Sequence record: ON529853.1
Length of the DNA stretch: 64,000 nucleotides
Reading direction: 5' to 3' (one strand)
A model generated the notes under the pieces. That model searched no databases. It was not told the DNA's origin and saw only the letters and a list, made by a program, of their open reading frames with translations. Position 1 is the first letter of the stretch; every line of letters begins with the position of its first letter. Below are positions 36,851-47,676 of this stretch, piece by piece. The translations under genes were made by a program, and so were the position numbers.

Positions 36851-36861
36851 TCAGGAAAACT

Positions 36862-36939: not shown

Positions 36940-36984
36940 ATGAAAGAGTAGCGTATCTCCACTACTCAGTGACAAAAGTAAAGT

Positions 36985-37061
36985 TGGTCCTAGCACCAGG
37001 ATTTGAACCTGGGACCGAGCGGTTATCGACCGCGCGCTCTACCAAACTGAGCTATGCTAGG
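36985..37061 (-). tRNA. tRNA-Ile(GAT)
   Basis: CCTAGCA/TGCTAGG-A-CCA; loop TCGATAA (C33). Confidence 0.85.
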
Positions 37062-37065
37062 GCTG

Positions 37066-37140
37066 TGGTAGCGGATACAGGAATCGCACCTGTGCTTGTC
37101 GGCGTGTCATACCGATGCCTTTCTACTTGGCTAATCCGCC
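37066..37140 (-). tRNA. tRNA-Val(GAC)
   Basis: GGCGGAT/ATCCGCT-A-CCA; loop ATGACAC; T-loop TGCGATT. Confidence 0.85.
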
Positions 37141-37153
37141 ACACAGGAAAAGG

Positions 37154-37228
37154 TGGCCCACCCAGGAGCGCTCGCATCTCCGTCTCGGGGATTTCACTCC
37201 CGTGCTAATCTGTCTCAGCTATGAGTGG
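37154..37228 (-). tRNA. Atypical tRNA-Phe(GAA)
   Basis: CCACTCA/TGGGTGG-G-CCA; loop GTGAAAT; aberrant T-arm. Confidence 0.65.
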
Positions 37229-37229
37229 A

Positions 37230-37313
37230 TGGTGGGAAGGGAGAGAATTCGCACTCTCACAGCTTGCGCGGGGGATTTACAGTCCCTTGGGCTCACTCGT
37301 GCCCAGCCTGCCC
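37230..37313 (-). tRNA. tRNA-Tyr(GTA)
   Basis: GGGCAGG/CCTTCCC-A-CCA; loop CTGTAAA; long variable arm. Confidence 0.85.
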
Positions 37314-37379
37314 AAAATGTTACGGCTCAGTCGCCGCCGGTCATGGTGATCTCCTGGATCAGATGAAGGTGTTGAAACG

Positions 37380-37414
37380 GAAAAGGCCCGCCTGGTGGAA
37401 ACCAGGCGGGCCTT
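37380..37414 (-). terminator. Intrinsic terminator (attenuator A) ahead of the 9-tRNA operon
   Basis: GGCCCGCCTGGT-TTCC-ACCAGGCGGGCC followed by TTTTCCGTTT. Confidence 0.85.
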
Positions 37415-37445
37415 CGAAACTTGGGTGTTCTAAGTGGGTATCAGA

Positions 37446-37541
37446 TTAAATCTGCGTCCCACCATCGCCCATGCACGAATGGCCCGCCCGGTTAAACCGG
37501 ACGACCTGAATCTGCTGCACGTTGTTGCGATAGGTGAACAT
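37446..37541 (-). CDS. Leader peptide A (31 aa, leaderless): MFTYRNNVQQIQVVRFNRAGHSCMGDGGTQI
   Basis: ATG lies 7 nt after the -10 box; 16 of codons 2-18 are read by the nine downstream tRNAs. Confidence 0.8.
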   Translation of the reverse strand: MFTYRNNVQQIQVVRFNRAGHSCMGDGGTQI

Positions 37542-37548
37542 GAGGAGA

Positions 37549-37577
37549 CATTTACTACAGGTGGCGGGCAGTGTCAA
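37549..37577 (-). promoter_or_regulatory. Promoter A: TTGACA-N17-TAAATG
   Basis: Perfect -35 and 17-nt spacer; predicted start falls at the leader ATG. Confidence 0.7.
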
Positions 37578-37788
37578 CATTATTGTCGACGATGGACCCA
37601 AGTTTTTTCGATCTCGCGATCCCAGACGCCCCAATTGCCGTCCGTCGGATAGTCGCGGTAGCGCCAGCCGCCGCAGTAACGGCACATGGCTTCGGTCTGG
37701 TCAGCCTCAGCGGGATGCGGCTCGCAGTCCCCCGAGACGTCGCACAAAGGCCACCCGTCCGGCCCCAGGGTGGGGTCGTCCGGGTCCG

Positions 37789-38085
37789 TCACAGCGTGTA
37801 GTCGACAGCGGGGTCGGGAAGCCAGACCTCTTCCAGCAGACGTTCCTGCCACTGGGCCTCGTGGTCCCAGGACAGGATCACGCCGGACCGCGTTTCGCTG
37901 CCGTCGGTCAGCGTCGCGCAGCCGTAGACGTCAAAGGGAGGCGCGCCATCATAGGAATGATGGCGCAAGGTATAGTGATGGGGACCGTTGCCGCCGCACC
38001 AGCGCACCAGAACTTTCGCTCCGTCGGGGAGAGCGCGGATTTCGGCCGGGGTCAGCCTGGGGGTATCGGGGACGGCGTGGGTCAT
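37789..38085 (-). CDS. Hypothetical protein (98 aa)
   Basis: TGATG overlap with the upstream gene. Confidence 0.7.
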   Translation of the reverse strand: MTHAVPDTPRLTPAEIRALPDGAKVLVRWCGGNGPHHYTLRHHSYDGAPPFDVYGCATLTDGSETRSGVILSWDHEAQWQERLLEEVWLPDPAVDYTL

Positions 38086-38348
38086 CAGGCGGGGTTCGGC
38101 GGCGTATACGGCATGGGGCGCAGACGGGGCTCGGTGCGCGGATGACTGATTCCGGTCGGCATGATGTTCAGTTGCAACCCGGCGCCCCGGCGCAGCAGCA
38201 TCATGAAGTCATGGGCACGCACAGCCTCGGCCGGCGAGGCGAATGCCAGTTCGATCAGCACGCGATTGCTGTCGGTGCTGCACGCGGTCGCGATCTCGTC
38301 AGGCTCCAGGTCCAGAGCCTGCGTGGGACTGATGTTGAGCCGGCTCAT
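38085..38348 (-). CDS. Hypothetical protein (87 aa)
   Basis: MSRLNISPTQ; ATG overlaps the def stop (ATGA). Confidence 0.65.
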   Translation of the reverse strand: MSRLNISPTQALDLEPDEIATACSTDSNRVLIELAFASPAEAVRAHDFMMLLRRGAGLQLNIMPTGISHPRTEPRLRPMPYTPPNPA

Positions 38349-38887
38349 GCGCGTTTCATCCGACGCACGTTGTCCTGGTGCTTCTTCAGCAGCATCGCCC
38401 GCTTCAGCGGCGAGACCCGGTCGATGTTGCGCACCCCGTCCAGGTGGTCCATCTCGTGCTGAAGGCAAATGGCCTTGTAGCCCTTGCCGGAGAGGCTCTG
38501 CATACGGCCGTGAATGTCCTGGTATTCGACCGTCACTTCCCGATGCCGTCGCACGGGGAAAAAGACGCCCGGCATGGACAGGCATCCCTCCGGCATCTCG
38601 ATCATGTCCTCGGACTTGTCGACGAACGTCGGGTTGATCAGGATCAGTTTGGGACGATCGACCATGGCGTCCTGCACCGGCAGGCCAACATCCGGCAGGT
38701 CGATCATGGTGAAGATGCGCAAGGGCACGCCGACCTGAACGGCGGCGAGCCCCGCGCCTTCCGCCAGCAACATGGTGTCGACCATGTCGAAGCAGAGCGC
38801 CCGCACCTCGTCGGTGATCTCGAAGACCGTATCAGAGGGCTTCGTCATCCGGGCGTCGGTGCAGGGGATGATCTGGCGCAGCGCCAT
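38345..38887 (-). CDS. def: Peptide deformylase
   Basis: GAGLAAVQVG, EGCLS and HEMDHLDG motifs. Confidence 0.97.
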   Translation of the reverse strand: MALRQIIPCTDARMTKPSDTVFEITDEVRALCFDMVDTMLLAEGAGLAAVQVGVPLRIFTMIDLPDVGLPVQDAMVDRPKLILINPTFVDKSEDMIEMPEGCLSMPGVFFPVRRHREVTVEYQDIHGRMQSLSGKGYKAICLQHEMDHLDGVRNIDRVSPLKRAMLLKKHQDNVRRMKRA

Positions 38888-39114
38888 TAGGGCAGGCTCC
38901 CCAGGCCGCCGGCGGCGGAAGCCCGCCCATCACGCCAGCGGCCGACGGCGCTGACCATCCGATCGGCCTGGCCCTCGACGACTTCCAAGACGTCGATCGC
39001 CTGCATCAGCGCCATGCGCGCGTCTTCCAGGTCAAGGTCCTGGAGTTTGACAATGCGGCCCCGCACCACGACCTGATAGTCGTGGTACGGCGCCCGTTCG
39101 GCCACTTCGGACAT
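38887..39114 (-). CDS. Hypothetical protein (75 aa)
   Basis: Coupled to def (TAATG). Confidence 0.65.
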   Translation of the reverse strand: MSEVAERAPYHDYQVVVRGRIVKLQDLDLEDARMALMQAIDVLEVVEGQADRMVSAVGRWRDGRASAAGGLGSLP

Positions 39115-39117
39115 GGC

Positions 39118-39411
39118 TCAGATTTCGCCGAGCGCGCTCAGGTACAGGTCCAGGATGGCGTCTTCTTCCTGGCGCTTGGCCTTGTCCTGCTTGCGCAGGC
39201 GCAGCACCTTGCGCAGAATCTTCACGTCGTATCCCTCGCCCTTGGCTTCGGCGAAGACTTCCTTCATGTCGACCATGACGGCCTGCTTGTCCTCTTCGAG
39301 GCGCTCCAGCCGCTCGATGATCGAGCGCAGGCGGCCCTGGGCGGAGGCGGTCAGGGCGTCGTCGGCCGACATGGCGTTGGCGGGCTCGACGCCGGTGGTG
39401 GTCTCGGTCAT
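39118..39411 (-). CDS. gapR: GapR/DUF2312 nucleoid-associated protein homologue
   Basis: LRSIIERLERLEEDKQAVMVDMKEVFAEAKGEGYDVKILRKVLRLRKQD...EEDAILDLYLSALG. Confidence 0.9.
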   Translation of the reverse strand: MTETTTGVEPANAMSADDALTASAQGRLRSIIERLERLEEDKQAVMVDMKEVFAEAKGEGYDVKILRKVLRLRKQDKAKRQEEDAILDLYLSALGEI

Positions 39412-39435
39412 AGGTCTCTCGGGGTTGGTCGCCGG

Positions 39436-39681
39436 TTATCCGGTGATGAGGAAACGGAGGACGGCGAGAAGTTCGCGGTCCGCATCAGGCTGTAGGGCCT
39501 TCTGGTCGATGAGGCGCAGGGCGGCGTTCTTGCGCGCCTGCTTCTTGGCGGCGTGGACGCCGAGAGTTTGCGCCAAGGCGCGCATCTCGGTCTCGTCCAC
39601 ATAGGCGCCGAGCGCATCCCCATACCGCCGGTTGGCGGGATAGGTGGCGTAGTCGGGGGCGAGCGGCGGTAGGCCGTCCAT
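39436..39681 (-). CDS. Hypothetical protein (81 aa)
   Basis: MDGLPPLAPDY; SD GGAG. Confidence 0.6.
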   Translation of the reverse strand: MDGLPPLAPDYATYPANRRYGDALGAYVDETEMRALAQTLGVHAAKKQARKNAALRLIDQKALQPDADRELLAVLRFLITG

Positions 39682-39857
39682 CACATGTCTCCACAAGGAT
39701 CGTGCAGGGTGTCGCCCTGGTCGAGGTCCTCGACGAAACGGCCGTCCCGGAAACGACCGGTGGTGGTCTGGCCGTTGAGCCGGCGCACGACCCGCAACTG
39801 ATGGTCCAGCCAGTAGTAGGGCACGCCCCACGCCTCGCGGTAGACCGGCTCGGTCAC
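39681..39857 (-). CDS. Hypothetical protein (58 aa)
   Basis: GTG start overlaps the DUF4170 stop. Confidence 0.55.
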   Translation of the reverse strand: MTEPVYREAWGVPYYWLDHQLRVVRRLNGQTTTGRFRDGRFVEDLDQGDTLHDPCGDM

Positions 39858-40114
39858 GAGTAGGTCGCGCCTGAAGCGCGAACCACCAGATCGGCGACAG
39901 GTTTGCCGTGGGCGACGATCATCTCGTCGTAGGTGTTGATGTGGAAACGCATCAGGGCGTTGTCGACCGTCTGCCAGGCGTAGGCCTTCCACGCGTCGCG
40001 GGCGTCTTCGCGGCGCGTGAAAGACCCCACGAAGATGATCTTGCGCGGATCGCGGAAGGCTTCGTCGCGGGGATGGGGGTGCTCGCCCCCATAGACGTAA
40101 TAGGTGTCAGGCAT
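39854..40114 (-). CDS. DUF4170 family protein
   Basis: YVYGGE...F.D...IFVGSF...EDARDAWKAYAWQTVDNALMRF pattern. Confidence 0.75.
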   Translation of the reverse strand: MPDTYYVYGGEHPHPRDEAFRDPRKIIFVGSFTRREDARDAWKAYAWQTVDNALMRFHINTYDEMIVAHGKPVADLVVRASGATYS

Positions 40115-40116
40115 GC

Positions 40117-41004
40117 TTACAAAGTCACGATCAATCGGGGATTGAAGTTCGGGTTCAGTTCATGCCCGACATAGCCGCGCGGATTGCAGATCACGCGGGT
40201 CTCGCCGATCTGGTAGTCGCTGCTGTCATGCATATGACCATGGACCCACAGGGCGGGCTCCCATTCCAGCATCAGCGGCTCCAGCCGCGAGGCGTAGGCC
40301 GGGTTCAGCGGCGATCCCCGATAGCGATGGTGGCTCGACTGCTCCGACGGCGCATGGTGAGTAATCACCACGGTCGGGCCGTCATGCGGAACCCGTAGCG
40401 TTTCGGCCAGGAAGAACCGGCTCTCCAGGTGAAGGCGCCGCGTGTCTTCCGCCGTCAGGCGCTGCTGCTGCTTCAGTTCGATCTGCTGATAGTCGTTCAT
40501 ATCGGACTGGGCGTGCCGGATCGACAAGGGCCAGGTCCCGTAGAGATCGAAGTCGGTCCACAGGGTGGCGCCGAGGAACCGGACGTCGCCCATATGGACC
40601 TGCTCGTTATCCATGACGAAGACGCGGGCGGGCGCCAGTTCGTCCGCCTTGGCCTTCATCTTCTCGATGTGGCGGTGGTAGCGCCGCTTGCCGTAGAACT
40701 CGTGGTTGCCCGGCACATAGAGGCAAGGGACGTCAGGGAAATGACGCGCCAGCCAGATCACGCCGACGACGCCCGTCGCCAGGTCGCCGGCGGCGATGAC
40801 CAAATCGATCTCGTCCGCCGTCGGCGCCGTCCAGGTGCGCCGGTCCATGCCGCCGAACTCCAGATGGAGGTCCGACAGGATCAGGGCGCGCAAGGGCCGT
40901 CGTCCGGACCGGCGCTGCGCCAGGCCGGCTTCGATGTCGGCCTGCATGTCGGCCGCAGCCGCCACGGTGAACTCCATCTCAGCCTTGCTCCACTCGGTCT
41001 CCAT
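40117..41004 (-). CDS. Calcineurin-like metallophosphoesterase
   Basis: LSDLHLE, AAGDL, VPGNHEFY, VITHHAP, WVHGHMH motifs. Confidence 0.93.
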   Translation of the reverse strand: METEWSKAEMEFTVAAAADMQADIEAGLAQRRSGRRPLRALILSDLHLEFGGMDRRTWTAPTADEIDLVIAAGDLATGVVGVIWLARHFPDVPCLYVPGNHEFYGKRRYHRHIEKMKAKADELAPARVFVMDNEQVHMGDVRFLGATLWTDFDLYGTWPLSIRHAQSDMNDYQQIELKQQQRLTAEDTRRLHLESRFFLAETLRVPHDGPTVVITHHAPSEQSSHHRYRGSPLNPAYASRLEPLMLEWEPALWVHGHMHDSSDYQIGETRVICNPRGYVGHELNPNFNPRLIVTL

Positions 41005-41024
41005 CGTGGAGCATCCTTGAAATC

Positions 41025-41143
41025 TGGAGCGGGTGGACAGACTCGAACTGCCGCCTCCGGGTTAGCCACCCGGCGCTCCTGGGTCCACGCGAACCCCCGA
41101 CGATGATTCGCGTGATCATCGTCGGCCCTAGAGCCTCACCCGC
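41025..41143 (-). ncRNA. 119-nt tRNA-like RNA: Gly-type acceptor, GCT anticodon, two-hairpin D-loop insertion
   Basis: GCGGGTG/CACCCGC-T-CCA; D-stem GCTC/GAGC around 52 nt; CCGGG-TGGCTAA-CCCGG; GGCAG-TTCGAGT-CTGTC. Confidence 0.7.
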
Positions 41144-41255
41144 ATAAGTTGGCAGGAGTTTTCAGATATGGCGAGCCATACCCAGGGCGACCCTCCTGCC
41201 AGGAACCCCCGTCTCGGTTTCTTTCACCGGCCCCGACACGAGCACCTGTCAAAGC

Positions 41256-41336
41256 CTATTTAGCCGTCAGGCTTGTGAGAACAAGAGAGGCGATTAGGCG
41301 CCTCTCGATGAACCACGTTGCGGACGGACGTAACAT
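41256..41336 (-). CDS. Possible leader peptide MLRPSATWFIERRLIASLVLTSLTAK
   Basis: Lies after TTGACA (41378-41373) and before a structured stretch and the tRNA-like RNA. Confidence 0.35.
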   Translation of the reverse strand: MLRPSATWFIERRLIASLVLTSLTAK

Positions 41337-41383
41337 CGGCTTGCCGTGATTACTGGCAGACGGCGCCGTAGCTGTCAACAATG

Positions 41384-41414
41384 AAAAACGCCCCGACCTT
41401 TCGATCGGGGCGTT
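41384..41414 (-). terminator. Intrinsic terminator closing tRNA operon B
   Basis: AACGCCCCGA-N8-TCGGGGCGTT followed by TTT. Confidence 0.8.
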
Positions 41415-41416
41415 CT

Positions 41417-41728
41417 TCAGAGATTCGCCATCCACTGCTTGCGGCAGCGGGTGTGGTCCTTCCAGGACTTGCCGCCGGGACGCGACGCCATGAGGTCGTC
41501 GTAGGACGACGGCAGGACCATCCGGCGGCCACGGGCGCGGTAGAGGCGGTCGTGGGCTTCGCCGGTGTTGCGACGCCGCTCCTGCATGGTGCGGGGGCAG
41601 CGATGCATGTAGCGCCAGCGATGGCGGAAACGCCGGCAGCGGTAGGGCTCGCCGGGCTCCAGGTAGAGGACGCGCCAGCCCACGAAGTAGAAGCCGGTGT
41701 GGGTGACGCGTTCAAATTGGGGCTTCAT
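41417..41728 (-). CDS. Basic hypothetical protein (103 aa)
   Basis: SD AGGAGG; followed by the terminator. Confidence 0.75.
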   Translation of the reverse strand: MKPQFERVTHTGFYFVGWRVLYLEPGEPYRCRRFRHRWRYMHRCPRTMQERRRNTGEAHDRLYRARGRRMVLPSSYDDLMASRPGGKSWKDHTRCRKQWMANL

Positions 41729-41828
41729 GACAGCCTCCTGCTAGGTTGAGTACCTAGCGGGTGCTGTATTCCAGGTAGAATTTGATCATGGCCGCATCCT
41801 ATCTCAAGCGGGGCGGTTCGTCGAGGAA

Positions 41829-41917
41829 TGGCGGATGGGGCAGGGATCGAACCCGCGTAACCCTCTCGGGTGTCGACCGCTTAGCAAGCGGCTGCCTTAC
41901 CTCTCGGCCACCCATCC
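41829..41917 (-). tRNA. tRNA-Ser(GCT)
   Basis: GGATGGG/CCCATCC-G-CCA; loop TTGCTAA; long variable arm. Confidence 0.95.
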
Positions 41918-41924
41918 GGGGTGA

Positions 41925-42009
41925 TGGCGGTGCGCCAGGGAATCGAACCCTCAACCTTGCGGTCGGCGACGGTTTTCAAGGCCGCTTGTCCCCATGGACG
42001 CTGCACACC
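41925..42009 (-). tRNA. tRNA-Ser(TGA) with a compact 4-bp/4-nt D-arm
   Basis: GGTGTGC/GCGCACC-G-CCA; D-arm GTCC-ATGG-GGAC; loop CTTGAAA. Confidence 0.8.
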
Positions 42010-42014
42010 AAAGA

Positions 42015-42105
42015 TGGCGGACGGCACGCGATTCGAACGCGTGGGACCCAGGGGGTCCGCCTGCTTTCCAAGCAGGTGCCTTAAGCCGGGCTCAGCCAGC
42101 CGTCC
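42015..42105 (-). tRNA. tRNA-Ser(GGA)
   Basis: GGACGGC/GCCGTCC-G-CCA; loop TTGGAAA. Confidence 0.95.
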
Positions 42106-42110
42106 GGTCT

Positions 42111-42328
42111 TGGTGGAGGCGAGGGGATTCGAACCCCCGTAGACGCCGAACCCCCGCATTACCGAGGGCCGATCTCAGGTTTAGAACGCGTGTGCCGTCC
42201 TGACCATCTTCCGCAGGCCAGGAGGTCTATCGTAACGACCCCGTCGATCGGTTGCCTCTGCGTCCCGGATTTACCCGGACCGTTGTTCTGTTCCACGGTG
42301 CTCATGCCGAAACCCGAGCGACGCCCCC
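42111..42328 (-). ncRNA. ssrA: One-piece compact tmRNA (218 nt)
   Basis: 5' GGGGGCG...GGTTTCGGC; 3' GGGGG-TTCGAAT-CCCCT-CGCCTCC-A-CCA; G3:U70 and A73 Ala identity; no anticodon arm. Confidence 0.8.
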
Positions 42329-42338
42329 GTGAAGGAAA

Positions 42339-42426
42339 TGGAGGATGGTGTGGGATTCGAACCCACGGAACCTTGCGGTCCTCCGGCTTTCGAAACCGGC
42401 GCGATCGGCCACTCCGCCAACCATCC
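42339..42426 (-). tRNA. tRNA-Ser(CGA)
   Basis: GGATGGT/ACCATCC-T-CCA; loop TTCGAAA. Confidence 0.92.
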
Positions 42427-42433
42427 AGAACAG

Positions 42434-42622
42434 TCAGGCCGAGGCCGGACTGTAGTTGTCGATGTCGTCGACCCGGATCGCCGTGCCCGCCGCAATCTGG
42501 CGGTCGGCGCTCAACAGGTCGGCGACCAGGTCGTCGGCCGAGACGGCGGTGCCGAGGGTGGCGAACTTCACGTTCACCAGGCGGCCGTCCGCAAACATCT
42601 CGTCGATCGCGGCGCGATCCAT
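42434..42622 (-). CDS. Hypothetical protein (62 aa) inside the tRNA operon
   Basis: MDRAAIDEMFADGRLVNVKF; SD-like AAAGG. Confidence 0.65.
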   Translation of the reverse strand: MDRAAIDEMFADGRLVNVKFATLGTAVSADDLVADLLSADRQIAAGTAIRVDDIDNYSPASA

Positions 42623-42655
42623 GATAGACCTTTCTGCCGGACGCGCCGGCGGTGA

Positions 42656-42726
42656 TGGTGGAGACAGTGGGGCTCGAACCCACCAAGGCGTCCTTGCAAA
42701 GGATGCCTGCGCCCTGCGCTGTCCCC
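42656..42726 (-). tRNA. Compact tRNA-Ala(TGC)
   Basis: GGGGACA/TGTCTCC-A-CCA (G3:U70); loop TTTGCAA; tiny D-arm. Confidence 0.8.
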
Positions 42727-42763
42727 GTAGGGGTTGATCGTCAGCCATGCTGACAACCATTGT

Positions 42764-42839
42764 TGGTCCTGGCACTCAGATTCGAACTGAGCCATCGTGC
42801 TCCACAAACACGCGCCTCCACCGCAGAGGCTTTACCAGG
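42764..42839 (-). tRNA. tRNA-His(GTG), no G-1, A73
   Basis: CCTGGTA/TGCCAGG-A-CCA; loop TTGTGGA. Confidence 0.88.
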
Positions 42840-42841
42840 GT

Positions 42842-42929
42842 TGGTCGCGACGACAGGGATCGAACCTGCCCGGCCTCTCGGCCACTACCACCTCAAGGTA
42901 GCGCGTCTACCAGACTCCGCCACGTCGCG
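42842..42929 (-). tRNA. tRNA-Leu(GAG)
   Basis: CGCGACG/CGTCGCG-A-CCA; loop TTGAGGT. Confidence 0.95.
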
Positions 42930-42938
42930 ATCGAATGT

Positions 42939-43024
42939 TGGTGCCCGACCCCGGACTCGAACCGGGACGCCACGAGGGCCACGCCTTTTGAGGGCGCTGT
43001 GTCTACCGTTCCAGCCAGACGGGC
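42939..43024 (-). tRNA. tRNA-Leu(CAA)
   Basis: Loop CTCAAAA; long variable arm; CCA end. Confidence 0.92.
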
Positions 43025-43033
43025 AGTGAAAGA

Positions 43034-43120
43034 TGGTGCGGGTGAGAGGATTCGAACCTCCCCGGCACAAAGGCCACGAGTACCTGAGACTCGCGCGGCT
43101 ACCAACTTCGCCACACCCGC
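43034..43120 (-). tRNA. tRNA-Leu(CAG)
   Basis: GCGGGTG/CACCCGC-A-CCA; loop CTCAGGT. Confidence 0.95.
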
Positions 43121-43125
43121 ATTTT

Positions 43126-43207
43126 TGGAGAACCCTGGTGGAGTCGAACCACTTGCGCCTGGATTAAAAGCCCAATCCCGGCCACCCGGATTTAACGCTC
43201 AAGGTCC
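43126..43207 (-). tRNA. Atypical tRNA-Lys(TTT)
   Basis: Loop CTTTTAA; ~10-nt linker before the D hairpin; U73. Confidence 0.65.
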
Positions 43208-43220
43208 CCTAAAATGATGT

Positions 43221-43311
43221 TGGTGAACGTGGTCGGACTCGCACCGACGATGAAGGTTGTAACCTAACGGGATTAAGAGCCCCGGCCTCTCGCTACTGAG
43301 GTGACACGTCC
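43221..43311 (-). tRNA. tRNA-Lys(CTT) with long variable arm
   Basis: GGACGTG/CACGTTC-A-CCA; loop CTCTTAA; T-loop TGCGAGT. Confidence 0.8.
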
Positions 43312-43349
43312 AAAACTGTTGTTCTTCTCCTGAAGACTTGATATGTGCA

Positions 43350-43420
43350 TGGAGCCGGCGGACGGTGTCGAACCGTCCCATGTCCACTACGAAAGGTCAG
43401 CCCTGCCACCAGGCGCCGGC
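43350..43420 (-). tRNA. Compact, degenerate tRNA-Thr(CGT)
   Basis: GCCGGCG/CGCCGGC-T-CCA; loop TTCGTAG; weak anticodon stem. Confidence 0.6.
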
Positions 43421-43428
43421 GTTGTTGT

Positions 43429-43499
43429 TGGTGCCAAGGGAGGGAGTCAAACCCTCGCTGAACCCATACCAAGGGCTCGACCGATCACCCGGCCTTGGC
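43429..43499 (-). tRNA. Compact tRNA-Thr(GGT)
   Basis: GCCAAGG/CCTTGGC-A-CCA; loop TTGGTAT. Confidence 0.75.
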
Positions 43500-43507
43500 G
43501 TTGAAGA

Positions 43508-43582
43508 TGGTCGGAACACCGGGATTCGAACCTGGGACCCCTAGCTTCCCGAGCCAGTGCGCTACCGCTGCGCTACATTCCG
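43508..43582 (-). tRNA. tRNA-Pro(GGG)
   Basis: CGGAATG/TGTTCCG-A-CCA; loop TCGGGAA (C33, A37). Confidence 0.85.
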
Positions 43583-43591
43583 ATTTGAAGA

Positions 43592-43668
43592 TGGTCGGCG
43601 AGGGAGGATTCGAACCTCCGATCCCTCCGACCCGAACGGAGTGACTTACCAGACTTGCCCACACGCCG
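43592..43668 (-). tRNA. tRNA-Pro(CGG)
   Basis: CGGCG.../...CGCCG-A-CCA; loop TTCGGGT. Confidence 0.92.
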
Positions 43669-43677
43669 ATGGAAACG

Positions 43678-43711
43678 AAAAAAGGCCCCGGAGGCTATGC
43701 GCCTGGGGCCT
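43678..43711 (-). terminator. Intrinsic terminator (attenuator B) just before the 15-tRNA + tmRNA operon
   Basis: GGCCCC-AGGC-GCATA-GCCT-CC-GGGGCC followed by TTTTTT. Confidence 0.8.
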
Positions 43712-43782
43712 GAAACAACTGCTGTTTTGGGATTCAGCAGGTGATCGGCCCCTTAAGGGCGCCTCACCTGCGAGGACTGGAC

Positions 43783-43917
43783 TTAGGGCCAGCCTTCCAA
43801 GGAGACGCCACCGGTGGTGGGGGACTTCGGCGACAGTTTCGTCGGCGCATGCGCGAGCGTCGACAGCGCCGTGGCGGCGGTCGAAAGATGGCTCAGCTTG
43901 TGCGACAAGGTAGTCAC
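43783..43917 (-). CDS. Leader peptide B (44 aa): MTTLSHKLSHLSTAATALSTLAHAPTKLSPKSPTTGGVSLEGWP
   Basis: GTG start downstream of promoter B; codons 2-35 encode only T, L, S, H, K, A, P, the amino acids of the downstream tRNAs. Confidence 0.8.
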   Translation of the reverse strand: MTTLSHKLSHLSTAATALSTLAHAPTKLSPKSPTTGGVSLEGWP

Positions 43918-43969
43918 GATGAAGGTCCAGTCCGAAGAAGGAGCGCGAATGCGCTGTGATGAAGTCTGA

Positions 43970-43998
43970 TCTCTACAGGAAGCTTGAGCGTATGTCAA
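43970..43998 (-). promoter_or_regulatory. Promoter B: TTGACA-N17-TAGAGA
   Basis: Perfect -35 and 17-nt spacer. Confidence 0.7.
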
Positions 43999-44195
43999 GA
44001 ACTTCAGCAGAAAAAGTTGGTAGAGGGGCTGATCGCGCTTGTCGAGCGACCCTCTCGAAACGCCTTGTGCCAGGATCGGCGGCGATCGTCAACAGGGAAA
44101 ATGCACGCGCGCGGCCGAGGGGGAGCGGAAGACCGCGCGCGTGCCCGGCAGACCGTCGGGGGACGGGGCCTGGGTCGTCGGGGGACGGGGAGGGG

Positions 44196-44432
44196 TCAGC
44201 CGGCGCGGCGCTTGAGCGTCTCGTGCAGCGGCGGATAGGGGACCGGGCCGTAGATCACCTCGACGAGGCGAGGGCGGCGGCCGGTGCGGATTTTGGAAGG
44301 CAGGGGCACGTTGCGGCGCCGCAGTTCGGCGGCGGCGGCGGCGCTCGCCAGGGAGCCTGACAGGTAGACGCCGATCAGTTCGGCGACCGTCAGGGTCATC
44401 ATGCGCTGGGCGCGGGTGGTGTTGTGAGCCAC
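44196..44432 (-). CDS. Hypothetical protein (78 aa)
   Basis: GTG start with SD GGAGA. Confidence 0.6.
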   Translation of the reverse strand: MAHNTTRAQRMMTLTVAELIGVYLSGSLASAAAAAELRRRNVPLPSKIRTGRRPRLVEVIYGPVPYPPLHETLKRRAG

Positions 44433-44530
44433 GAGGGTCTCTCCATCTGGATGTGATCCAGGCGGGAGACGCGGTTTCGCGCTGGGTGACCGGTGTGGTC
44501 CCCGTCCTGGAAATTACCAGATGCGAGAGT

Positions 44531-44722
44531 TTAGTCGGAGGGCTTGGCCCCGAAGACCGAGGCGATCGCCGTCAAAGCCTTCTTGACCCGGTTGGGTCGC
44601 TGGGTCAGCGCCGAGGCGCAGACCTTCTTGATTTCGTCGAGGGTGAGCGAGGCCGGGTCACGCAGGCCGCGCGCGGCGATCGAGCCGACGCTGGCGGAGG
44701 TGACTTCGGGGGTGGTGCTCAT
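44531..44722 (-). CDS. Hypothetical protein (63 aa)
   Basis: MSTTPEVTSASVGSIAARGL; SD GAGG; directly after tRNA-Asp. Confidence 0.65.
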   Translation of the reverse strand: MSTTPEVTSASVGSIAARGLRDPASLTLDEIKKVCASALTQRPNRVKKALTAIASVFGAKPSD

Positions 44723-44733
44723 GGAAAAACCTC

Positions 44734-44808
44734 TGGCGAGTCCAAGGGGAGTTGAACCCCTCTCTCCACCGTGACAGGGTGGTGTCCTAACCGATAGACG
44801 ATGGACCC
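44734..44808 (-). tRNA. tRNA-Asp(GTC)
   Basis: GGGTCCA/TGGACTC-G-CCA; loop CTGTCAC. Confidence 0.95.
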
Positions 44809-44839
44809 GTATCAGAGGGTCGATCCGCAGGAAGATGCT

Positions 44840-44917
44840 TGGAAGGGCGCCGGAGACTCGAACTCCGCTCACTTGGTTGAAAGCCAAGTATCCTGCAAAC
44901 CGCTAGACGAGCGCCCC
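44840..44917 (-). tRNA. tRNA-Glu(TTC)
   Basis: GGGGCGC/GCGCCCT-T-CCA; loop CTTTCAA. Confidence 0.93.
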
Positions 44918-44951
44918 ATAAAGCACAGGGCGTCGAACACGAGAGCCGCGA

Positions 44952-45017
44952 TTAGGCGGCGGTCGTATCTCGGCCCTGGAAGGCCTCTCGTTCGTAGCTG
45001 GTCAGACGGTAGGTCAT
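44952..45017 (-). CDS. Leaderless short ORF MTYRLTSYEREAFQGRDTTAA
   Basis: ATG lies 6 nt after the -10 of TTGACA-N17-TACAAG (45052-45024). Confidence 0.5.
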   Translation of the reverse strand: MTYRLTSYEREAFQGRDTTAA

Positions 45018-45229
45018 TTGGTGCTTGTAACAGAACTGTCGGTGGGTGTCAAGAAGGACGGCGAATCTTTTTTGGCCTTTCGGGCGGGACGATCTTCCTC
45101 GCCCTCAGGCTCGGCCGCGTCCCAGCCCATCCACAGGGCCGCGAGAAAGGCAGGCGGACCCATCAGGGCTTCCAACCGCTTCAAGGCCCGGTCGTTGGCC
45201 GCCAGGAAGGCGTCGCCGTATTCAAGCAT
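45014..45229 (-). CDS. Possible hypothetical protein (71 aa)
   Basis: SD GAGG before ATG 45229; overlaps a promoter. Confidence 0.4.
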   Translation of the reverse strand: MLEYGDAFLAANDRALKRLEALMGPPAFLAALWMGWDAAEPEGEEDRPARKAKKDSPSFLTPTDSSVTSTK

Positions 45230-45247
45230 GGAACCTCGGAGGATACA

Positions 45248-45669
45248 GGGACAGGCTTCAATGGGCGGCGTTTGACCGCGCCCATCTCGGCGGTAGCAGC
45301 GCACCAGCCCTGCTCGGCTGGCCCCGCCCCTCGTTCCGGCATGTGCCAGGATCGACGGCAAAGGTCAAGGGGGGAATTGCGGTGGGTACAGCTTCAACCG
45401 GCCTTGCGGCCTGCGGGTCTTTCGGGCGTCCTGCCCACCGCGCCTACTACGACGCCTTTTTCGGCCCCGGCGCGCCGGAGAAGAAAAATCGACGGGTGAC
45501 CGCTACCGGCCTCGCCTGCTGGCCCGTCCCAGCGCCTGACCTTCTCGACGCGACGCCCTTGTGGGCGTTATGGCCTTCCCGTCCGAAGACAGACGCCGCG
45601 AAGGGTCAGCGGGACCGCATGATCGTCAGCCGCACGGCCAGCGCAGCGAGAGGTTCAGAGGCCTGTCCC
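45248..45669 (-). ncRNA. Candidate ~420-nt multi-domain structured RNA
   Basis: Terminal 9-bp helix GGGACAGGC/GCCTGTCCC; several nested helices; UUCG and GCAA tetraloops; starts 8 nt after the tRNA-Gly CCA. Confidence 0.6.
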
Positions 45670-45677
45670 GGAAAGAG

Positions 45678-45752
45678 TGGAGCGACTGGTCGGAATCGAA
45701 CCGACGTCCCCAGGTTGGAAGCCTGGTGCTAAGGCCCCTCAGCTACAGTCGC
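45678..45752 (-). tRNA. tRNA-Gly(TCC)
   Basis: GCGACTG/CAGTCGC-T-CCA; loop CTTCCAA. Confidence 0.95.
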
Positions 45753-45766
45753 AGTATAAAACAAGG

Positions 45767-45842
45767 TGGAGCGACTCTCGGGACTCGAACCCGACCCTGC
45801 GCGTTGGCAACGCGTTGTACCCACCCATAATACGTGAGTCGC
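45767..45842 (-). tRNA. tRNA-Gly(GCC)
   Basis: GCGACTC/GAGTCGC-T-CCA; loop TTGCCAA. Confidence 0.92.
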
Positions 45843-45854
45843 ATGGTTAATAAA

Positions 45855-45936
45855 TGGCACGGGTGGAGGGATTCGAACCCCCGACATATGCTGGTTTTGG
45901 AGACCAGTGCCTTGAGCCAGACTTGGCGACACCCGT
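45855..45936 (-). tRNA. tRNA-Trp(CCA)
   Basis: ACGGGTG/CACCCGT-G-CCA; loop CTCCAAA. Confidence 0.92.
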
Positions 45937-45949
45937 GTAAACTTGAAGG

Positions 45950-46474
45950 CTACTTGTAGCGCTCTTGGAGGAACTTGACAACCCGCTGCGGCGTACTTTC
46001 GTCTGCGGTGGTCCGGAAATCGATCCGGTCCCCCAACAGCGCCAGCAGTTTCTTGTCCACCTCCAGGGCCTCCCTCTCGTTGTGGTGGCGGCCGTAGGTC
46101 TGATAGGCGGACGCCGGTCGATCGAGCCAGACGTTGACGTTCTCGTAGGAATCAAAGAGGTCGAAGACCTCCTGGTGGAACTCCGGCTGGGCGTAGTCGC
46201 CCTGGCCGTAGATGCAGCCCAGCAGCAAGGGGCTGTCGGTCAGAATCCAGTCGACGTGCCCGAGAAACCGTTTCAGCCGCGACGCCTGCTTCCAGGTGAC
46301 GCGCCGTTGATCCGCCAGGGTCGCCCAGTCCTTAGAGACAGAACGCTCAGTGGCGTATTCCTCGACCTGGGCGGCGCGGTAGCCGCCGATCTTCATGTGA
46401 AAGAAGGTGCCGGCCTTGACCGTCGACTTTCCGCCGCACGGGCCGGACCAGAAGTTCAGGACACGCGTCGTCAT
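45950..46474 (-). CDS. P-loop NTPase, NadR/AAA_28-like
   Basis: LNFWSGPCGGKST Walker A; QVEEYA; WILTDSPLLL. Confidence 0.8.
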   Translation of the reverse strand: MTTRVLNFWSGPCGGKSTVKAGTFFHMKIGGYRAAQVEEYATERSVSKDWATLADQRRVTWKQASRLKRFLGHVDWILTDSPLLLGCIYGQGDYAQPEFHQEVFDLFDSYENVNVWLDRPASAYQTYGRHHNEREALEVDKKLLALLGDRIDFRTTADESTPQRVVKFLQERYK

Positions 46475-46545
46475 TCAGCAAACGGACTTTCAACCGGCTG
46501 GCAGGATTCAGGTTTTGCGGGGGTGGCGCAGTGCGCCGGCAGGTC

Positions 46546-46845
46546 TTAGCTGCGCCAGCTTCCGTCGGCGTCGTCAACGACGTCCGTGGAATCCAGGTCG
46601 GCTTCGACCGTCCGGCGCTGTCGACCTCGGCCGCGTCCGCGCGGCGCCTCTTCAGCATCCTCGGGCTCGGCCAAGACGATGAGGGCCTCGACATCGTCGA
46701 CGACGATCTCAACCGGAGCGACGACTTCGACGCGAGTCCAGGGCGTGCGCGACCAGCCGTGCTCAAGCACGAGGTTGCTCGCCTTCGCCGTGGGAACGTC
46801 GAAGGGCTCGCAAGTTTCCGGATGATAAACGCGCTCGGTAGCCAT
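46546..46845 (-). CDS. Acidic hypothetical protein (99 aa)
   Basis: Preceded by TTGACA-N17-TAAGGT (46882-46854). Confidence 0.7.
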   Translation of the reverse strand: MATERVYHPETCEPFDVPTAKASNLVLEHGWSRTPWTRVEVVAPVEIVVDDVEALIVLAEPEDAEEAPRGRGRGRQRRTVEADLDSTDVVDDADGSWRS

Positions 46846-46890
46846 AGTGAGGGACCTTATACGAACTGCACGCGATTGTCAATTATTACG

Positions 46891-47676
46891 TCAATCGAGC
46901 GCCCATCGGAACCATACGGCCTTCTTCTCTCCCGGCGTTTCCGCGTATTCAGCCTCCACGGGCGTGACGAAGTCGTTGAGGAAGGCGCCGTTCAGAAAAT
47001 CGCCCGTCGCCCGATGGCCGAGGATGAAGCGCGGGGGTCCGCCAGGTCCGTAGGTGTCGAACCCTTGACCGATGCGTCCGCCCGCAAGGCGTCGAACCGT
47101 ACACGCGGCCTGGGTCCAGAGGTAGGCGCGGTAGCGGCCGCGCCGCAGGCGCGTGTTGAGCGCCAGGCGCAACATGGACCCGACAGGCGGGGCTGCCTCA
47201 ATGTGGGAGAAGACGAGTTGATCGGCGGCGTCATACAGGCCGATCCGCACCGCGCCGGCGCCGGCAGTCACCCAGACGCCGGCTTCGACCAGGCGAATCG
47301 TATCCGAGGCGACGTAGAAATCTTCAAACAGAATGGTTTCGGGCGGCAGGTCGACATCTTCCGGAGCCCCGTCCAAGGCCAGGCCAGGAACGGCGAACCC
47401 GCCCGGCGGCAAGTCTACCGCCACGACCCCGTCGACGACCGCCAGCGGCGCGAGGTCCGGGTCCCAAACCAGGACGCCGGCCTTGCGCGTCAGGGGCGCG
47501 CCTTGCGGTCCTGCCGCCGGGGCGACGCCGGAGACGGCGGCCGGCAGGTGGATGGATTCAGGGCGTCCCTCGACGCGAATGTGCAGCGTCCGGTCAGCCG
47601 TGTTGTGCCCGACCTGACCCGGCAGCAGATGCGGGCGCGCCTTCGGCGTGGAGGAGTGTTTGTTCTGGACCGCCAT
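46891..47676 (-). CDS. Virion accessory protein (261 aa)
   Basis: TGATG coupling; beta-sandwich-like C-terminus similar in style to the end of the giant Gly-rich protein. Confidence 0.7.
   Translation of the reverse strand: MAVQNKHSSTPKARPHLLPGQVGHNTADRTLHIRVEGRPESIHLPAAVSGVAPAAGPQGAPLTRKAGVLVWDPDLAPLAVVDGVVAVDLPPGGFAVPGLALDGAPEDVDLPPETILFEDFYVASDTIRLVEAGVWVTAGAGAVRIGLYDAADQLVFSHIEAAPPVGSMLRLALNTRLRRGRYRAYLWTQAACTVRRLAGGRIGQGFDTYGPGGPPRFILGHRATGDFLNGAFLNDFVTPVEAEYAETPGEKKAVWFRWALD

Follow-up and report, generated by a model that had tools for sequence, protein, structure and literature searches.

A putative ribosome-mediated transcription attenuator ahead of a tRNA operon in Brevundimonas phage vB_BpoS-Bambus

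Why should a block of phage tRNA genes be preceded by its own promoter, a short open reading frame (ORF) and a terminator, and why should most of this ORF be built from codons for those amino acids that the tRNAs behind it serve? This question is raised by a locus, here called unit B, in the window analysed, i.e. 64,000 nt of the jumbo phage Brevundimonas phage vB_BpoS-Bambus (ON529853.1). In our view, unit B probably serves a phage tRNA operon as a ribosome-mediated transcription attenuator, in which slow decoding of the leader leads to read-through into the tRNA genes. All evidence is computational (comparative and thermodynamic, with no experimental support) and comprises the parts of the unit, their conservation, the match in composition between leader and array, and a set of predicted alternative helices. 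To our knowledge, the leader-peptide attenuation described to date concerns genes of amino-acid biosynthesis and not tRNA genes, and our literature searches, which left most subscription-journal papers out of scope, returned no account of attenuators before phage tRNA arrays. Neither transcript-end nor ribosome-profiling data for the locus were found in the literature, and the phiCbK RNA-seq paper that was searched does not cover it.

The genes to be controlled form a compact array:

41829..43668, minus strand: array B, 15 tRNAs for Pro, Thr, Lys, Leu, His, Ala and Ser only

The array begins with Pro(CGG), Pro(GGG), Thr(GGT), Thr(CGT), Lys(CTT), Lys(TTT) and Leu(CAG/CAA/GAG), and continues with His(GTG), Ala(TGC), a CDS of 61 aa, Ser(CGA), a tmRNA-like element and Ser(GGA/TGA/GCT). 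The original prediction of 15 tRNAs plus a tmRNA stands for the tRNAs: ARAGORN recovers ten at default settings and a further four, namely Thr(CGT), Lys(CTT), Lys(TTT) and Ser(TGA), only at relaxed thresholds, while Thr(GGT) (~43498-43427) was read by eye in Bambus and is called by ARAGORN at the same place in relatives. The tmRNA, however, is weak and unsupported, as the element at 42111-42242 reaches 31.9 bits against an Rfam gathering score of 47 and no tmRNA is called by ARAGORN at its defaults. A scan of seven phages at relaxed thresholds found an array of nearly identical make-up, for these seven amino acids, behind the leader in each, among them Gurke, Bajun, phiCbK, Rogue, BL10, and CcrPW. 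Array composition is thus uniform among the phages examined and offers no variation with which a co-variation of leader and array could be followed.

Unit B is bounded by strong terminators on both sides, as judged by folding, and its upstream part is laid out as follows:

44098..44144, minus strand: intrinsic terminator of the upstream operon (14-bp GC-rich stem, -30.7 kcal/mol, z = -4.5, then UUUU)
43970..43998, minus strand: sigma-70-like promoter (TTGACA 43998-43993, 17-nt spacer, TAGAGA 43975-43970)
43918..43963, minus strand: 5' UTR, with an SD-like GGA (43928-43926) 8 nt ahead of the start codon
43783..43917, minus strand: leader ORF B, 44 codons, (M)TTLSHKLSHLSTAATALSTLAHAPTKLSPKSPTTGGVSLEGWP, with GTG start at 43917 and TAA stop at 43785-43783
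41383..41418, minus strand: terminator at the end of unit B (16-bp perfect stem, -30.1 kcal/mol, z = -8.0, U run)

The first of these terminators, which is kept in Brevundimonas phages, shields unit B from upstream transcription. Both the promoter (TTGACA-N17-TAGAGA on the minus strand) and the 44-codon ORF, with its start, stop and exact codon list, lie where they had originally been read. The -35 box TTGACA is invariant in 7/7 aligned Brevundimonas phages and also occurs at the equivalent position in phiCbK and two metagenomic variants; promoters of the same type precede the two related leaders, A and C, described below. The transcription start itself is inferred. The SD-like motif is weak in Bambus (GGA), and the other variants inspected carry (A)GGA or GAGAG upstream of the start codon at similar spacing.

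Translation of the leader ORF is likewise an inference, for which the pattern of conservation is most informative. The ORF is unannotated in Bambus and appears as a CDS for a hypothetical protein in Bajun and phiCbK (gp335, phrog_12742). A Pfam search with the 44-aa product gave no family, the sole match in PHROGs was phrog_12742 (unknown function) and was obtained only for the phiCbK orthologue, and no Rfam or Pfam family accounts for the leader region. The leader is known in 14 variants across the Dolichocephalovirinae, i.e. from Brevundimonas phages, Caulobacter phages, and metagenomes, all of which have start, frame, and stop in common and differ in alignment length only by multiples of three. 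The sense frame is the only one kept open in all 14; an antisense CDS of 50 aa, annotated in Papperlapapp and Kabachok, was rejected because the antisense frames of other lineages contain stops. In Bambus, the open frame already begins at a TTG (43998); this TTG falls inside the -35 box, and the start codon conserved in relatives is the GTG/ATG at the 43917 position. From the stop codon to the tRNA, 112-116 nt were measured in the 13 isolate loci. Peptide identity between variants falls to 27%, with fairly conserved N-terminal LSH and central LAHAP motifs, and nucleotide conservation across the locus is high, synonymous sites included.

Within this ORF, one stretch carries the link to the array:

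43813..43914, minus strand: proposed sensing stretch, codons 2-35, with 34/34 residues in T/L/S/H/K/A/P

The restriction of these codons to the seven amino acids of the array, on which the original prediction was built, was confirmed for every position, and the run is the longest of its set in the six frames of the window; the runner-up is an Ala-rich run of 27 residues. The frequency of about 45% that had been assumed for the seven residues agrees with the measured values, 0.45 across the six frames and 0.41 for long ORFs. Among the 14 variants, 92-100% of the sensing residues belong to the set, and 16 of the 18 replacements in the stretch remain in it (vs 0.47 expected, p = 2e-4), so that the compositional bias, whose absence from orthologous loci would have counted against the proposal, is conserved across several Caulobacter and Brevundimonas phage lineages and metagenomic relatives. 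The additional claim that nearly every isoacceptor is sampled holds as a count (14/15 covered) but does not rise above chance, given 12.2 expected from peptide composition and normal phage codon usage (P = 0.094). Synonymous codon choice in the leader is ordinary for Bambus (P = 0.44). The idea of selection on the leader for coverage of every isoacceptor or for rare codons was accordingly dropped, as nothing beyond expectation was observed.

Four mutually exclusive helices are predicted to connect the last nine codons of the leader to the terminator:

43756..43812, minus strand: P1, a long imperfect hairpin whose 5' strand is the last ~9 codons, with the stop codon in the loop
43737..43771, minus strand: H1, anti-antiterminator hairpin (GCAGGUGA...UCACCUGC), -22.8 kcal/mol, z = -4.6
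43705..43752, minus strand: P2, antiterminator, GGGGCCGAUCACCUGCUG (43752-43735) paired with CAGCAGUUGUUUCAGGCCCC (43724-43705)
43678..43711, minus strand: T, attenuator terminator (hairpin 43711-43683, -20.9 kcal/mol, z = -4.0; U6 at 43683-43678)

The 3' strand of P1 is at the same time the 5' arm of H1, and H1 is incompatible with both P1 and P2. As the 3' end of the leader ORF sits in P1, the competitor of H1, the position of the ribosome is coupled to the terminator. The P1 window has a predicted minimum free energy (MFE) of -30.5 kcal/mol in Bambus and of -28.6 to -33.4 in 12 lineages, and none of the 133 control stop-codon windows reaches this stability (mean -17.1, minimum -28.0). This comparison with real stop-codon windows replaced a random-window duplex test, in which the duplex between the ORF end and the H1 5' arm was set against random 45-nt windows and was not significant for the Brevundimonas type (p = 0.02-0.41) because strong background duplexes abound in GC-rich sequence; the phiCbK type gave 0.006. 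The apical helix of P1 is realised by at least six different sequence solutions among the variants, and the last leader codons co-vary with the downstream RNA rather than preserve the peptide sequence. Little formal covariation can be counted (MAFFT, RNAalifold, Brevundimonas group), since the helices hardly vary and the alignment misplaces the stop-codon hairpin.

P2 comprises 16 bp in the MFE structure of transcripts lacking the 3' arm of the terminator (13/13 variants folded) and is found in the RNAalifold consensus too, with p = 0.003-0.08 per lineage for its core pairing against random windows. The GGGGCC (43752-43747) that had been proposed to pair with GGCCCC was located as described, the pairing is predicted in all Brevundimonas-type variants, and in the phiCbK group it is swapped for another complementary pair, GGAGCCGC:GCGGCUCC. 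The U6 terminator was also recovered by folding. It lies 9 nt ahead of tRNA-Pro (which starts at 43668), leaving no space for a further promoter, and is kept in every variant examined except CcrPW, which retains the ORF and its composition without P1 and without a U-run terminator. That transcription really ends at U6 is inferred.

From these parts, the following mechanism may be proposed. Host RNA polymerase would initiate at TTGACA-N17-TAGAGA and a ribosome would start on the 44-codon leader, the RNA beyond codon 35 having two mutually exclusive folds. If the last nine codons are free of ribosomes, they would join with the segment beyond the stop codon to give P1, which would leave the following segment free to form P2 with the 5' arm of the terminator; no terminator would then arise, and polymerase would continue into the 15 tRNA genes. 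Conversely, a ribosome that keeps pace and stands on the last codons or the stop codon would melt P1, whereupon the freed segment would fold into H1, T would form, and transcription would end at U6. Since codons 2-35 lie upstream of P1, slow decoding at any of them, summed over all 34, would delay the ribosome, such that tRNA synthesis would be switched on by delay and off by ample tRNA. The sign of this switch is inferred, and so is the response itself, i.e. that read-through rises in vivo when cognate charged tRNA is limiting. It is equally an inference that the physiological signal is tRNA supply rather than amino-acid supply or translation in general.

How far do folding calculations reproduce such a switch? 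Before the 3' arm of the terminator exists, the MFE structure is P1 + P2 in 13/13 variants, and masking the ORF end turns it into H1 + T for Bambus, Papperlapapp, mgL014, and all of the phiCbK group. In Gurke, Kikimora, mgL018, mgL016, and Bajun, the equilibrium MFE is still that of the antiterminator when a ribosome occupies the stop codon. In a partition function with a ribosome mask, taken as illustrative only, P(terminator) rises from 0.01-0.4 to 0.95-0.99 after the A site passes codon 35-38 (phiCbK, Rogue, BL57, Papperlapapp); this switch is weak in Gurke, absent in Bajun, and altered when the 5' UTR is omitted. Codon-shuffled ORFs equal the observed switch in 5-28% of trials, and this control is itself unstable and dependent on the 5' UTR. 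These equilibrium predictions are hence fragile. By sequence and folding, unit B meets the structural criteria of an attenuator, i.e. a promoter-proximal ORF enriched in cognate codons and preceded by an SD-like, if weak, motif, a terminator before the first gene, an antiterminator that occupies the terminator 5' arm, and an ORF segment engaged in alternative pairing, and the masking switch is seen in most variants, though not in Gurke or Bajun.

Two further units in the window follow a similar plan:

37381..37577, minus strand: unit C (TTGACA 37577-37572; leader ORF 37541-37446, encoding MFTYRNNVQQIQVVRFNRAGHSCMGDGGTQI up to its stop; terminator 37415-37381)
44918..45050, minus strand: unit A (promoter; leader ORF 45017-44952, encoding MTYRLTSYEREAFQGRDTTAA up to its stop; 34 nt before tRNA-Glu and tRNA-Asp)

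Leader C is followed by tRNAs for Tyr, Phe, Val, Ile, Val, Gln, Asn, Arg, and Arg, and YRNNVQQIQVVRFNR within it exceeds in length every other Y/F/V/I/Q/N/R run of the window, all six frames considered. When the sensing stretches of B and C are cross-classified by leader and array set, Fisher's test gives p = 2.4e-12, and the same test on whole ORFs gives 4e-10 for Bambus, 9e-10 for phiCbK, and 2e-10 for Rogue. Judged from its sequence, unit C appears to be an independent replicate of the rule seen in unit B with a disjoint amino-acid set, which supports the attenuator reading. It is moreover predicted to fold as a classical four-segment attenuator, with P(terminator) at 0.75 without a ribosome, ~0 with the A site at codons 10-13, 0.98 at codons 16-27, and 0.94-0.98 through codon 30. 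In unit A, the stop codon of the leader is located in the loop of a terminator-like hairpin. Taken together, it seems somewhat better than an even bet that CbK-like phages (Dolichocephalovirinae) run a demand-driven tRNA homeostat with three leader-peptide attenuators, A for Glu/Asp, B for Pro/Thr/Lys/Leu/His/Ala/Ser, and C for Tyr/Phe/Val/Ile/Gln/Asn/Arg. Each leader would time the ribosome over codons for exactly the amino acids of its array, and each tRNA block would be made only when decoding of its codons slows, for example, where phage mRNAs demand more than the host's tRNAs can serve or where certain tRNAs are destroyed by anticodon nucleases of the host.

The original interpretation of unit B as an attenuator is thus backed, on comparative and thermodynamic grounds alone, by conserved composition, antiterminator pairing, the hairpin at the ORF end, and the independent unit C, and has to be weighed against other readings of the same parts. 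A real translation-coupled attenuator might, for instance, respond to translation as a whole (availability of ribosomes, coupling, or shut-off of the host), its leader composition having some other cause. Indeed, the structural cascade itself is indifferent to which codons lie upstream, and codon and isoacceptor choice are ordinary; yet leaders B and C use disjoint sets that each match their own array and each form the longest such run in the window, and substitutions in the sensing stretch remain within the set, which makes this reading unlikely in our view. An attenuator of opposite sign, in which efficient leader translation brings about read-through or protection from Rho and thus positive feedback or a licence for tRNA synthesis, could draw on the five variants (Gurke, Kikimora, mgL018, mgL016, and Bajun) that retain the antiterminator MFE with a ribosome at the stop, as well as on unit A, where the terminator 5' arm lies inside the ORF so that a ribosome there would block termination. 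In unit B, by contrast, H1 has P1 as its sole competitor, so that a ribosome which covers the last codons and thereby displaces P1 allows H1 to favour T, and in unit C antitermination is predicted only with the ribosome held at codons 10-13; we hold the opposite sign to be quite improbable.

Slow decoding as the trigger also fares better than explanations that dispense with attenuation by the leader. The ORF might encode a small functional low-complexity peptide that merely has its own terminator, the tRNAs being made by leaky read-through and the match of sets being coincidence or codon adaptation. Such a peptide would fit the hypothetical-protein annotation in Bajun and phiCbK (phrog_12742) and the fairly conserved LSH and LAHAP motifs, but we give it very little credence, as composition and geometry are retained at identities down to 27%, the last codons follow the downstream RNA instead of keeping a peptide sequence, units A and C repeat the design with different residue sets, and Pfam has no match. 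Hardest to sustain is a structured non-coding 5' leader, e.g. an element for RNase III/RNase E processing or for stability of the tRNA precursor, with an ORF that is incidental to GC-rich sequence: while P1, as an imperfect duplex of ~20 bp, has the size of an RNase III substrate and nucleotide conservation extends to synonymous sites, this is the sole open frame, its start and stop are conserved in 14/14 variants with length differences in multiples of three, and a constraint on the residue set would be meaningless for non-coding RNA.

Leader-peptide attenuation is the textbook means by which bacteria match amino-acid synthesis to need, and a slow-decoding sensor before tRNA genes would both resemble and depart from its known forms. 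The his operon leader (hisL) of E. coli and Salmonella combines a short ORF rich in regulatory codons with a cascade of exclusive hairpins and an intrinsic terminator. The general attenuator class of hisL has been described (PMC1183508). Unit B shares with it the promoter-proximal ORF, the exclusive hairpins leading to a terminator, and the selection of the fold by ribosome position; unlike hisL, it would regulate tRNAs instead of biosynthetic enzymes, sense seven amino acids instead of one, spread its regulatory codons over 34 codons upstream of the first helix where those of hisL are clustered inside it, and, without translation, is predicted to be read through where hisL undergoes super-attenuation. 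Closer in one respect are the multivalent attenuators of ilvGMEDA, ilvBN, and thr, in which limitation for any listed amino acid relieves termination. They likewise mix codons of several amino acids in one leader peptide, but these are only two or three and are products of the regulated pathway, whereas the seven of unit B are set by the downstream tRNA genes and units A and C add further sets. The pheST attenuator of E. coli, with its pheM leader, controls a synthetase. It is similar in that leader-peptide attenuation acts on a component of the translation apparatus for the amino acid of the leader codons, and different in that this component is a synthetase, the amino acid a single one, and the system cellular, not viral; a pheL-type leader has been described (PMC3082878). 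The trpL attenuator of Sinorhizobium meliloti demonstrates that ribosome-mediated attenuation operates in alphaproteobacteria, there with two or three Trp codons and biosynthesis genes (PMC6614838). This is the class of the Bambus host, and unit C has the same four-segment logic. T-box riboswitches, finally, bind tRNA directly and have no ORF. They also match the expression of translation-related genes to how a given tRNA is charged or otherwise placed, by a choice between terminator and antiterminator, yet differ from unit B in precisely this direct binding and missing ORF. An Rfam E-value search of 36000-47000 found neither a T-box (RF00230, a model of the conserved specifier-loop and T-box elements) nor another family in 43670-44000.

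If confirmed, unit B would be, as far as our searches reach, the first case in which tRNA genes are governed by how fast their own codons are decoded, and this in a virus. Such control would explain the fixed tRNA gene blocks of large phages, the terminators immediately before them, and the conserved small "hypothetical proteins" located there, such as phiCbK gp335, and would tie phage tRNAs to codon demand and to host defences that target tRNAs in a way open to direct testing. As phiCbK infects the model bacterium Caulobacter crescentus, the system is tractable. For other tRNA-rich phages, a search rule follows, namely to look for short ORFs whose residues make up exactly the amino-acid set of the tRNAs behind them. 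An IMG/VR search with the leader peptide profile produced pattern matches, none of them confirmed, and one with the motif TGTCGCAYAAGCTGAGC gave 7 chance matches without tRNA context; the one metagenome scan yielded at least 120 chance matches, with no leader-like ORF among the matches listed. In Roseobacter phage DSS3P8, the tRNA layout differs and no obvious homologous unit was seen. The short leader of unit A carries an E-x-E...D motif that is invariant in 13 variants.

The window matches the 348 kb genome of Brevundimonas phage vB_BpoS-Bambus (Dolichocephalovirinae) at 100% identity. There, the leader of unit B, that is, the promoter, leader ORF B and terminator preceding a 15-tRNA array, lies within the 527 nt that separate tRNA-Pro (43668) from a 78-aa hypothetical CDS (44432-44196), a stretch for which the Bambus record has no annotation (window coordinates are those of ON529853.1 minus 248000). 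The promoter, the ORF with an identical codon list and a U6 terminator, whose hairpin is predicted and whose action is inferred, could be read from the minus strand as originally predicted; the parts are as follows:

43998-43993 and 43975-43970, minus strand: promoter, TTGACA / 17-nt spacer / TAGAGA (sequence reading)
8 nt 5' of GTG 43917, minus strand: SD-like GGA (sequence reading)
43917-43783, minus strand: leader ORF B, 44 codons, GTG 43917, TAA 43785-43783 (sequence reading)
43771-43737, minus strand: H1 hairpin, GCAGGUGA...UCACCUGC, -22.8 kcal/mol
43711-43683, minus strand: hairpin of terminator T, -20.9 kcal/mol, with U6 at 43683-43678 and tRNA-Pro 9 nt on
44144-44098, minus strand: strong terminator ending the upstream operon, -30.7 kcal/mol
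41418-41383, minus strand: terminator ending the unit B array, -30.1 kcal/mol

Strong terminators thus insulate unit B on both sides. Functionally, it is rather likely to represent ribosome-mediated attenuation, a class already described (PMC1183508) and known in alphaproteobacteria (PMC6614838). The parts, their conservation and the match of amino acid sets derive from sequence analysis and the mutually exclusive helices from predicted folds; that the ORF is translated, that transcription ends at the U6 tract, which way the switch works and what physiological signal drives it are inferences.

Codons 2-35 (the sensing stretch) encode exclusively T/L/S/H/K/A/P (34/34), the amino acids of the array, as had been noted before. 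No other run of its kind in any of the six frames of the 64 kb is as long, the second comprising 27 residues; across the window, the seven residues have a frequency of 0.45 when six frames are counted and of 0.41 in long ORFs. The further claim that the leader samples nearly every isoacceptor holds numerically (14 of 15 covered) but does not exceed chance (12.2 expected, P = 0.094). Synonymous codon choice is ordinary for the phage (P = 0.44), and leaders of the phiCbK group mostly use GCC for Ala, as opposed to the sole phage tRNA-Ala, UGC. The match between leader and array holds for amino acids, and an anticodon-level match is not demonstrable. Single out-of-set residues are F2 and N7 (phiCbK type) and Y23 (Gurke).

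A second leader in the same window, unit C, is by its sequence an independent replicate of the unit B design:

37381-37577, minus strand: unit C (phiCbK counterpart, L009 5010-5215)
37577-37572, minus strand: promoter TTGACA
37541-37446, minus strand: leader ORF C, MFTYRNNVQQIQVVRFNRAGHSCMGDGGTQI, stop
37415-37381, minus strand: very strong terminator, -31 kcal/mol

It precedes tRNAs for Tyr GTA, Phe GAA, Val GAC, Ile GAT, Val TAC, Gln TTG, Asn GTT, Arg CCT and Arg CCG, and leader C (MFTYRNNVQQIQVVRFNRAG...) contains Tyr/Phe/Val/Ile/Gln/Asn/Arg codons, exactly the amino acids of the tRNAs behind it; no other Y/F/V/I/Q/N/R run in the window's six frames is as long as its codons 4-18 (YRNNVQQIQVVRFNR). 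Leaders B and C have residue sets without overlap, each equalling the amino acid set of its own array. Cross-classification of the sensing stretches by leader and array set (34, 0; 1, 16) gave a Fisher p of 2.4e-12, and that of whole ORFs gave 4e-10 (Bambus), 9e-10 (phiCbK) and 2e-10 (Rogue). An orthologous leader C (MSKTYRQFVRQIQVVRNIRAG...) stands before a Tyr/Phe/Val/Ile/Gln/Arg array in phiCbK and Rogue. The predicted fold of unit C is that of a classical four-segment attenuator, made up of GUCGUCCGG (codons 13-15), CCGGGCGGGCC (codons 17-20), which is complementary to the terminator 5' arm, and the two terminator arms. The computed terminator probability is 0.75 without a ribosome, approximately 0 when one of codons 10-13 occupies the A site, 0.98 at codons 16-27 and 0.94-0.98 through codon 30.

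Unit A (44918-45050, minus strand) has counterparts in 13 related loci. Its ORF has 20-21 codons, an E-x-E...D motif that does not vary (13/13 variants) and a position 32-40 nt 5' of tRNA-Glu and tRNA-Asp in all 13; the 3' third of the ORF supplies the 5' arm of a terminator-like hairpin, the loop of which carries the stop codon. This geometry suggests a different logic, namely a ribosome occluding the terminator. The Trp-Gly-Gly array has no leader unit, a CDS lying directly 5' of it.

Unit B precedes the equivalent array in every relative examined, i.e., the Brevundimonas phages Marchewka, Papperlapapp, Domovoi, Kabachok, Gurke, Kikimora and Bajun, the Caulobacter phages phiCbK, Rogue, BL10, BL57 and CcrPW, and four metagenomic variants recovered by peptide-profile search. 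Start codon, frame and stop of leader B are kept, alignment length differences being multiples of three, and the stop-to-tRNA spacing is 112-116 nt in 13/13 isolate loci, including CcrPW with its unrelated downstream sequence; there, ORF and composition are retained and both P1 (the ORF-end hairpin) and the U-run are absent. Despite peptide identities to Bambus down to 27%, residues 5' of the last nine codons remain 92-100% in-set, so that a lack of conserved bias in orthologous loci, which would have refuted the original prediction, is not found. Of the 18 minority residues in the alignment of Brevundimonas-type leaders, 16 are in-set, compared with 0.47 expected from single-base neighbours (p = 2e-4, uncorrected for phylogeny). 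Seven phages scanned at relaxed thresholds, phiCbK and Rogue among them, carry essentially one array for the same seven amino acids 3' of the leader, and among these no lineage has a differing unit B array.

Folding of the transcript up to just before the terminator 3' arm predicted P1 and P2 (the antiterminator) in 13/13 variants with a U-run. In P1, an imperfect hairpin of 19-22 bp, the last ~9 codons provide the 5' strand, the loop contains the stop codon and the 5' arm of H1 (the anti-antiterminator) serves as the 3' strand. P2 pairs the H1 3' arm with the terminator 5' arm (GGGGCCGAUCACCUGCUG with CAGCAGUUGUUUCAGGCCCC in the Bambus fold, as had been guessed; GGAGCCGC with GCGGCUCC in the phiCbK group, enclosing two nested helices). 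Owing to these shared strands, P1, H1, P2 and T are linked in series, and no helix can coexist with the one next to it. Across 12 lineages, the folding energy of the 57-nt P1 window is -28.6 to -33.4 kcal/mol, stronger than that of 133/133 control windows at other ORF stops of the phage (mean -17.1, minimum -28.0); as far as folding energies can tell, P1 is no chance hairpin. Its apical helix is built from unrelated sequences (GGCUGG/CCAGUC, CCUGU/ACAGG, GAGACC/GGUCUC, GGAGACCcUGU/ACAGGUCUCC, AGGGAC/GUCCCU and further variants in phiCbK, Rogue and BL10). The last leader codons vary as peptide (GGVSLEGWP, GGVTSATETI, VASTSETFS and others) and escape the residue rule because they are constrained as RNA.

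The P2 core pairing reached p = 0.003-0.08 per lineage against random windows, and the RNAalifold consensus of the Brevundimonas-type alignment is the P2 conformer. When the ORF end was masked to mimic a ribosome at the stop, the MFE structure changed to H1 plus T in Bambus, Papperlapapp, the metagenomic variant mgL014 and the phiCbK group. In partition-function scans, the terminator probability rose from 0.01-0.4 to 0.95-0.99 once the A site had passed codon 35-38 (phiCbK, Rogue, BL57, Papperlapapp); Gurke showed this switch weakly and Bajun not at all. These equilibrium figures are fragile: codon-shuffled ORFs equalled the observed switch in 5-28% of cases, and the numbers also depend on inclusion of the 5' UTR. 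The decision between folds would have to be kinetic.

In the mechanism we propose, a ribosome pacing the polymerase would sit on the 5' strand of P1 during synthesis of H1, with the result that T forms and the polymerase terminates. If delayed at any of codons 2-35, the ribosome would leave P1 free, allowing P2 to form and the polymerase to read into the tRNA genes. Since all 34 sensing codons lie 5' of P1, delays would be summed, and the leader might thus act as an integrating timer of decoding speed for seven amino acids.

Structurally, the known systems nearest to unit B are the his leader, with its multiple hairpins, and the multivalent leaders of ilv and thr, with pheST/pheM as the nearest precedent for attenuation of a translation-apparatus target. 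New are the tRNAs as regulated genes, the (inferred) sensing of seven amino acids by one leader, and a set of leaders with complementary residue sets in one virus. No known RNA or protein family covering the element was found, nor was any description of such attenuators before phage tRNA arrays in the full texts searched; the phiCbK genome paper (PMC3556154) mentions neither leaders nor attenuation.

The tRNA list of the original prediction proved essentially right. ARAGORN at default called Pro CGG/GGG, Leu CAG/CAA/GAG, His, Ala and Ser CGA/GGA/GCT, and 85% thresholds added Thr CGT, Lys CTT, Lys TTT and Ser TGA; Thr GGT was read by eye in Bambus and is called at the equivalent position in relatives. 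Both Thr, Lys TTT and Ser TGA fall below ARAGORN default and Rfam thresholds. The phage tRNA-Lys genes (43221-43311, minus strand; phiCbK, L009 3851-4035) measure 87-91 nt, which implies a long extra arm. Long-arm tRNAs of bacteria are those for Leu, Ser and Tyr, and such an arm is unusual for Lys.

The deposited annotation of the phiCbK and Rogue arrays omits candidate Thr, His, Ala or Ser genes found at relaxed thresholds; according to the 2012 genome paper, Thr is absent from all these phages, His occurs in Colossus only and Rogue lacks Ser (PMC3556154). Candidates lie in annotation gaps of phiCbK (L009 3667-3739, 4314-4465, 4654-4740) and Rogue (L010 4045-4194, 4793-5222).

The tmRNA that had been assigned to the array was not upheld, the Rfam match being sub-threshold only (31.9 bits vs 47). 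This match covers part of a ~219-nt element (42108-42326, minus strand) with a tRNA-like acceptor stem bearing G3:U70, a canonical T arm and a CCA end. The element, in which a tag ORF was not identified, might represent a miniature gene of tmRNA-like or tRNA-Ala-like type. Between tRNA-Ala and tRNA-Ser, all Brevundimonas relatives share a conserved 61-aa CDS of no known function (MDRAAIDEMFADGRL..., 42436-42620, minus strand). Papperlapapp has a ~110-nt insertion between upstream terminator and leader promoter (L002, about 3460-3570) that the other phages lack. Finally, 3' of the terminator ending the array, the region 41025-41380 (minus strand) holds a further TTGACA promoter, a 26-codon ORF (MLRPSATWFIERRLIASLVLTSLTAK, stop) containing a terminator-like hairpin (41306-41285) and, further 3', a 76-nt tRNA-like gene with anticodon GCT, and may constitute a fourth leader unit.
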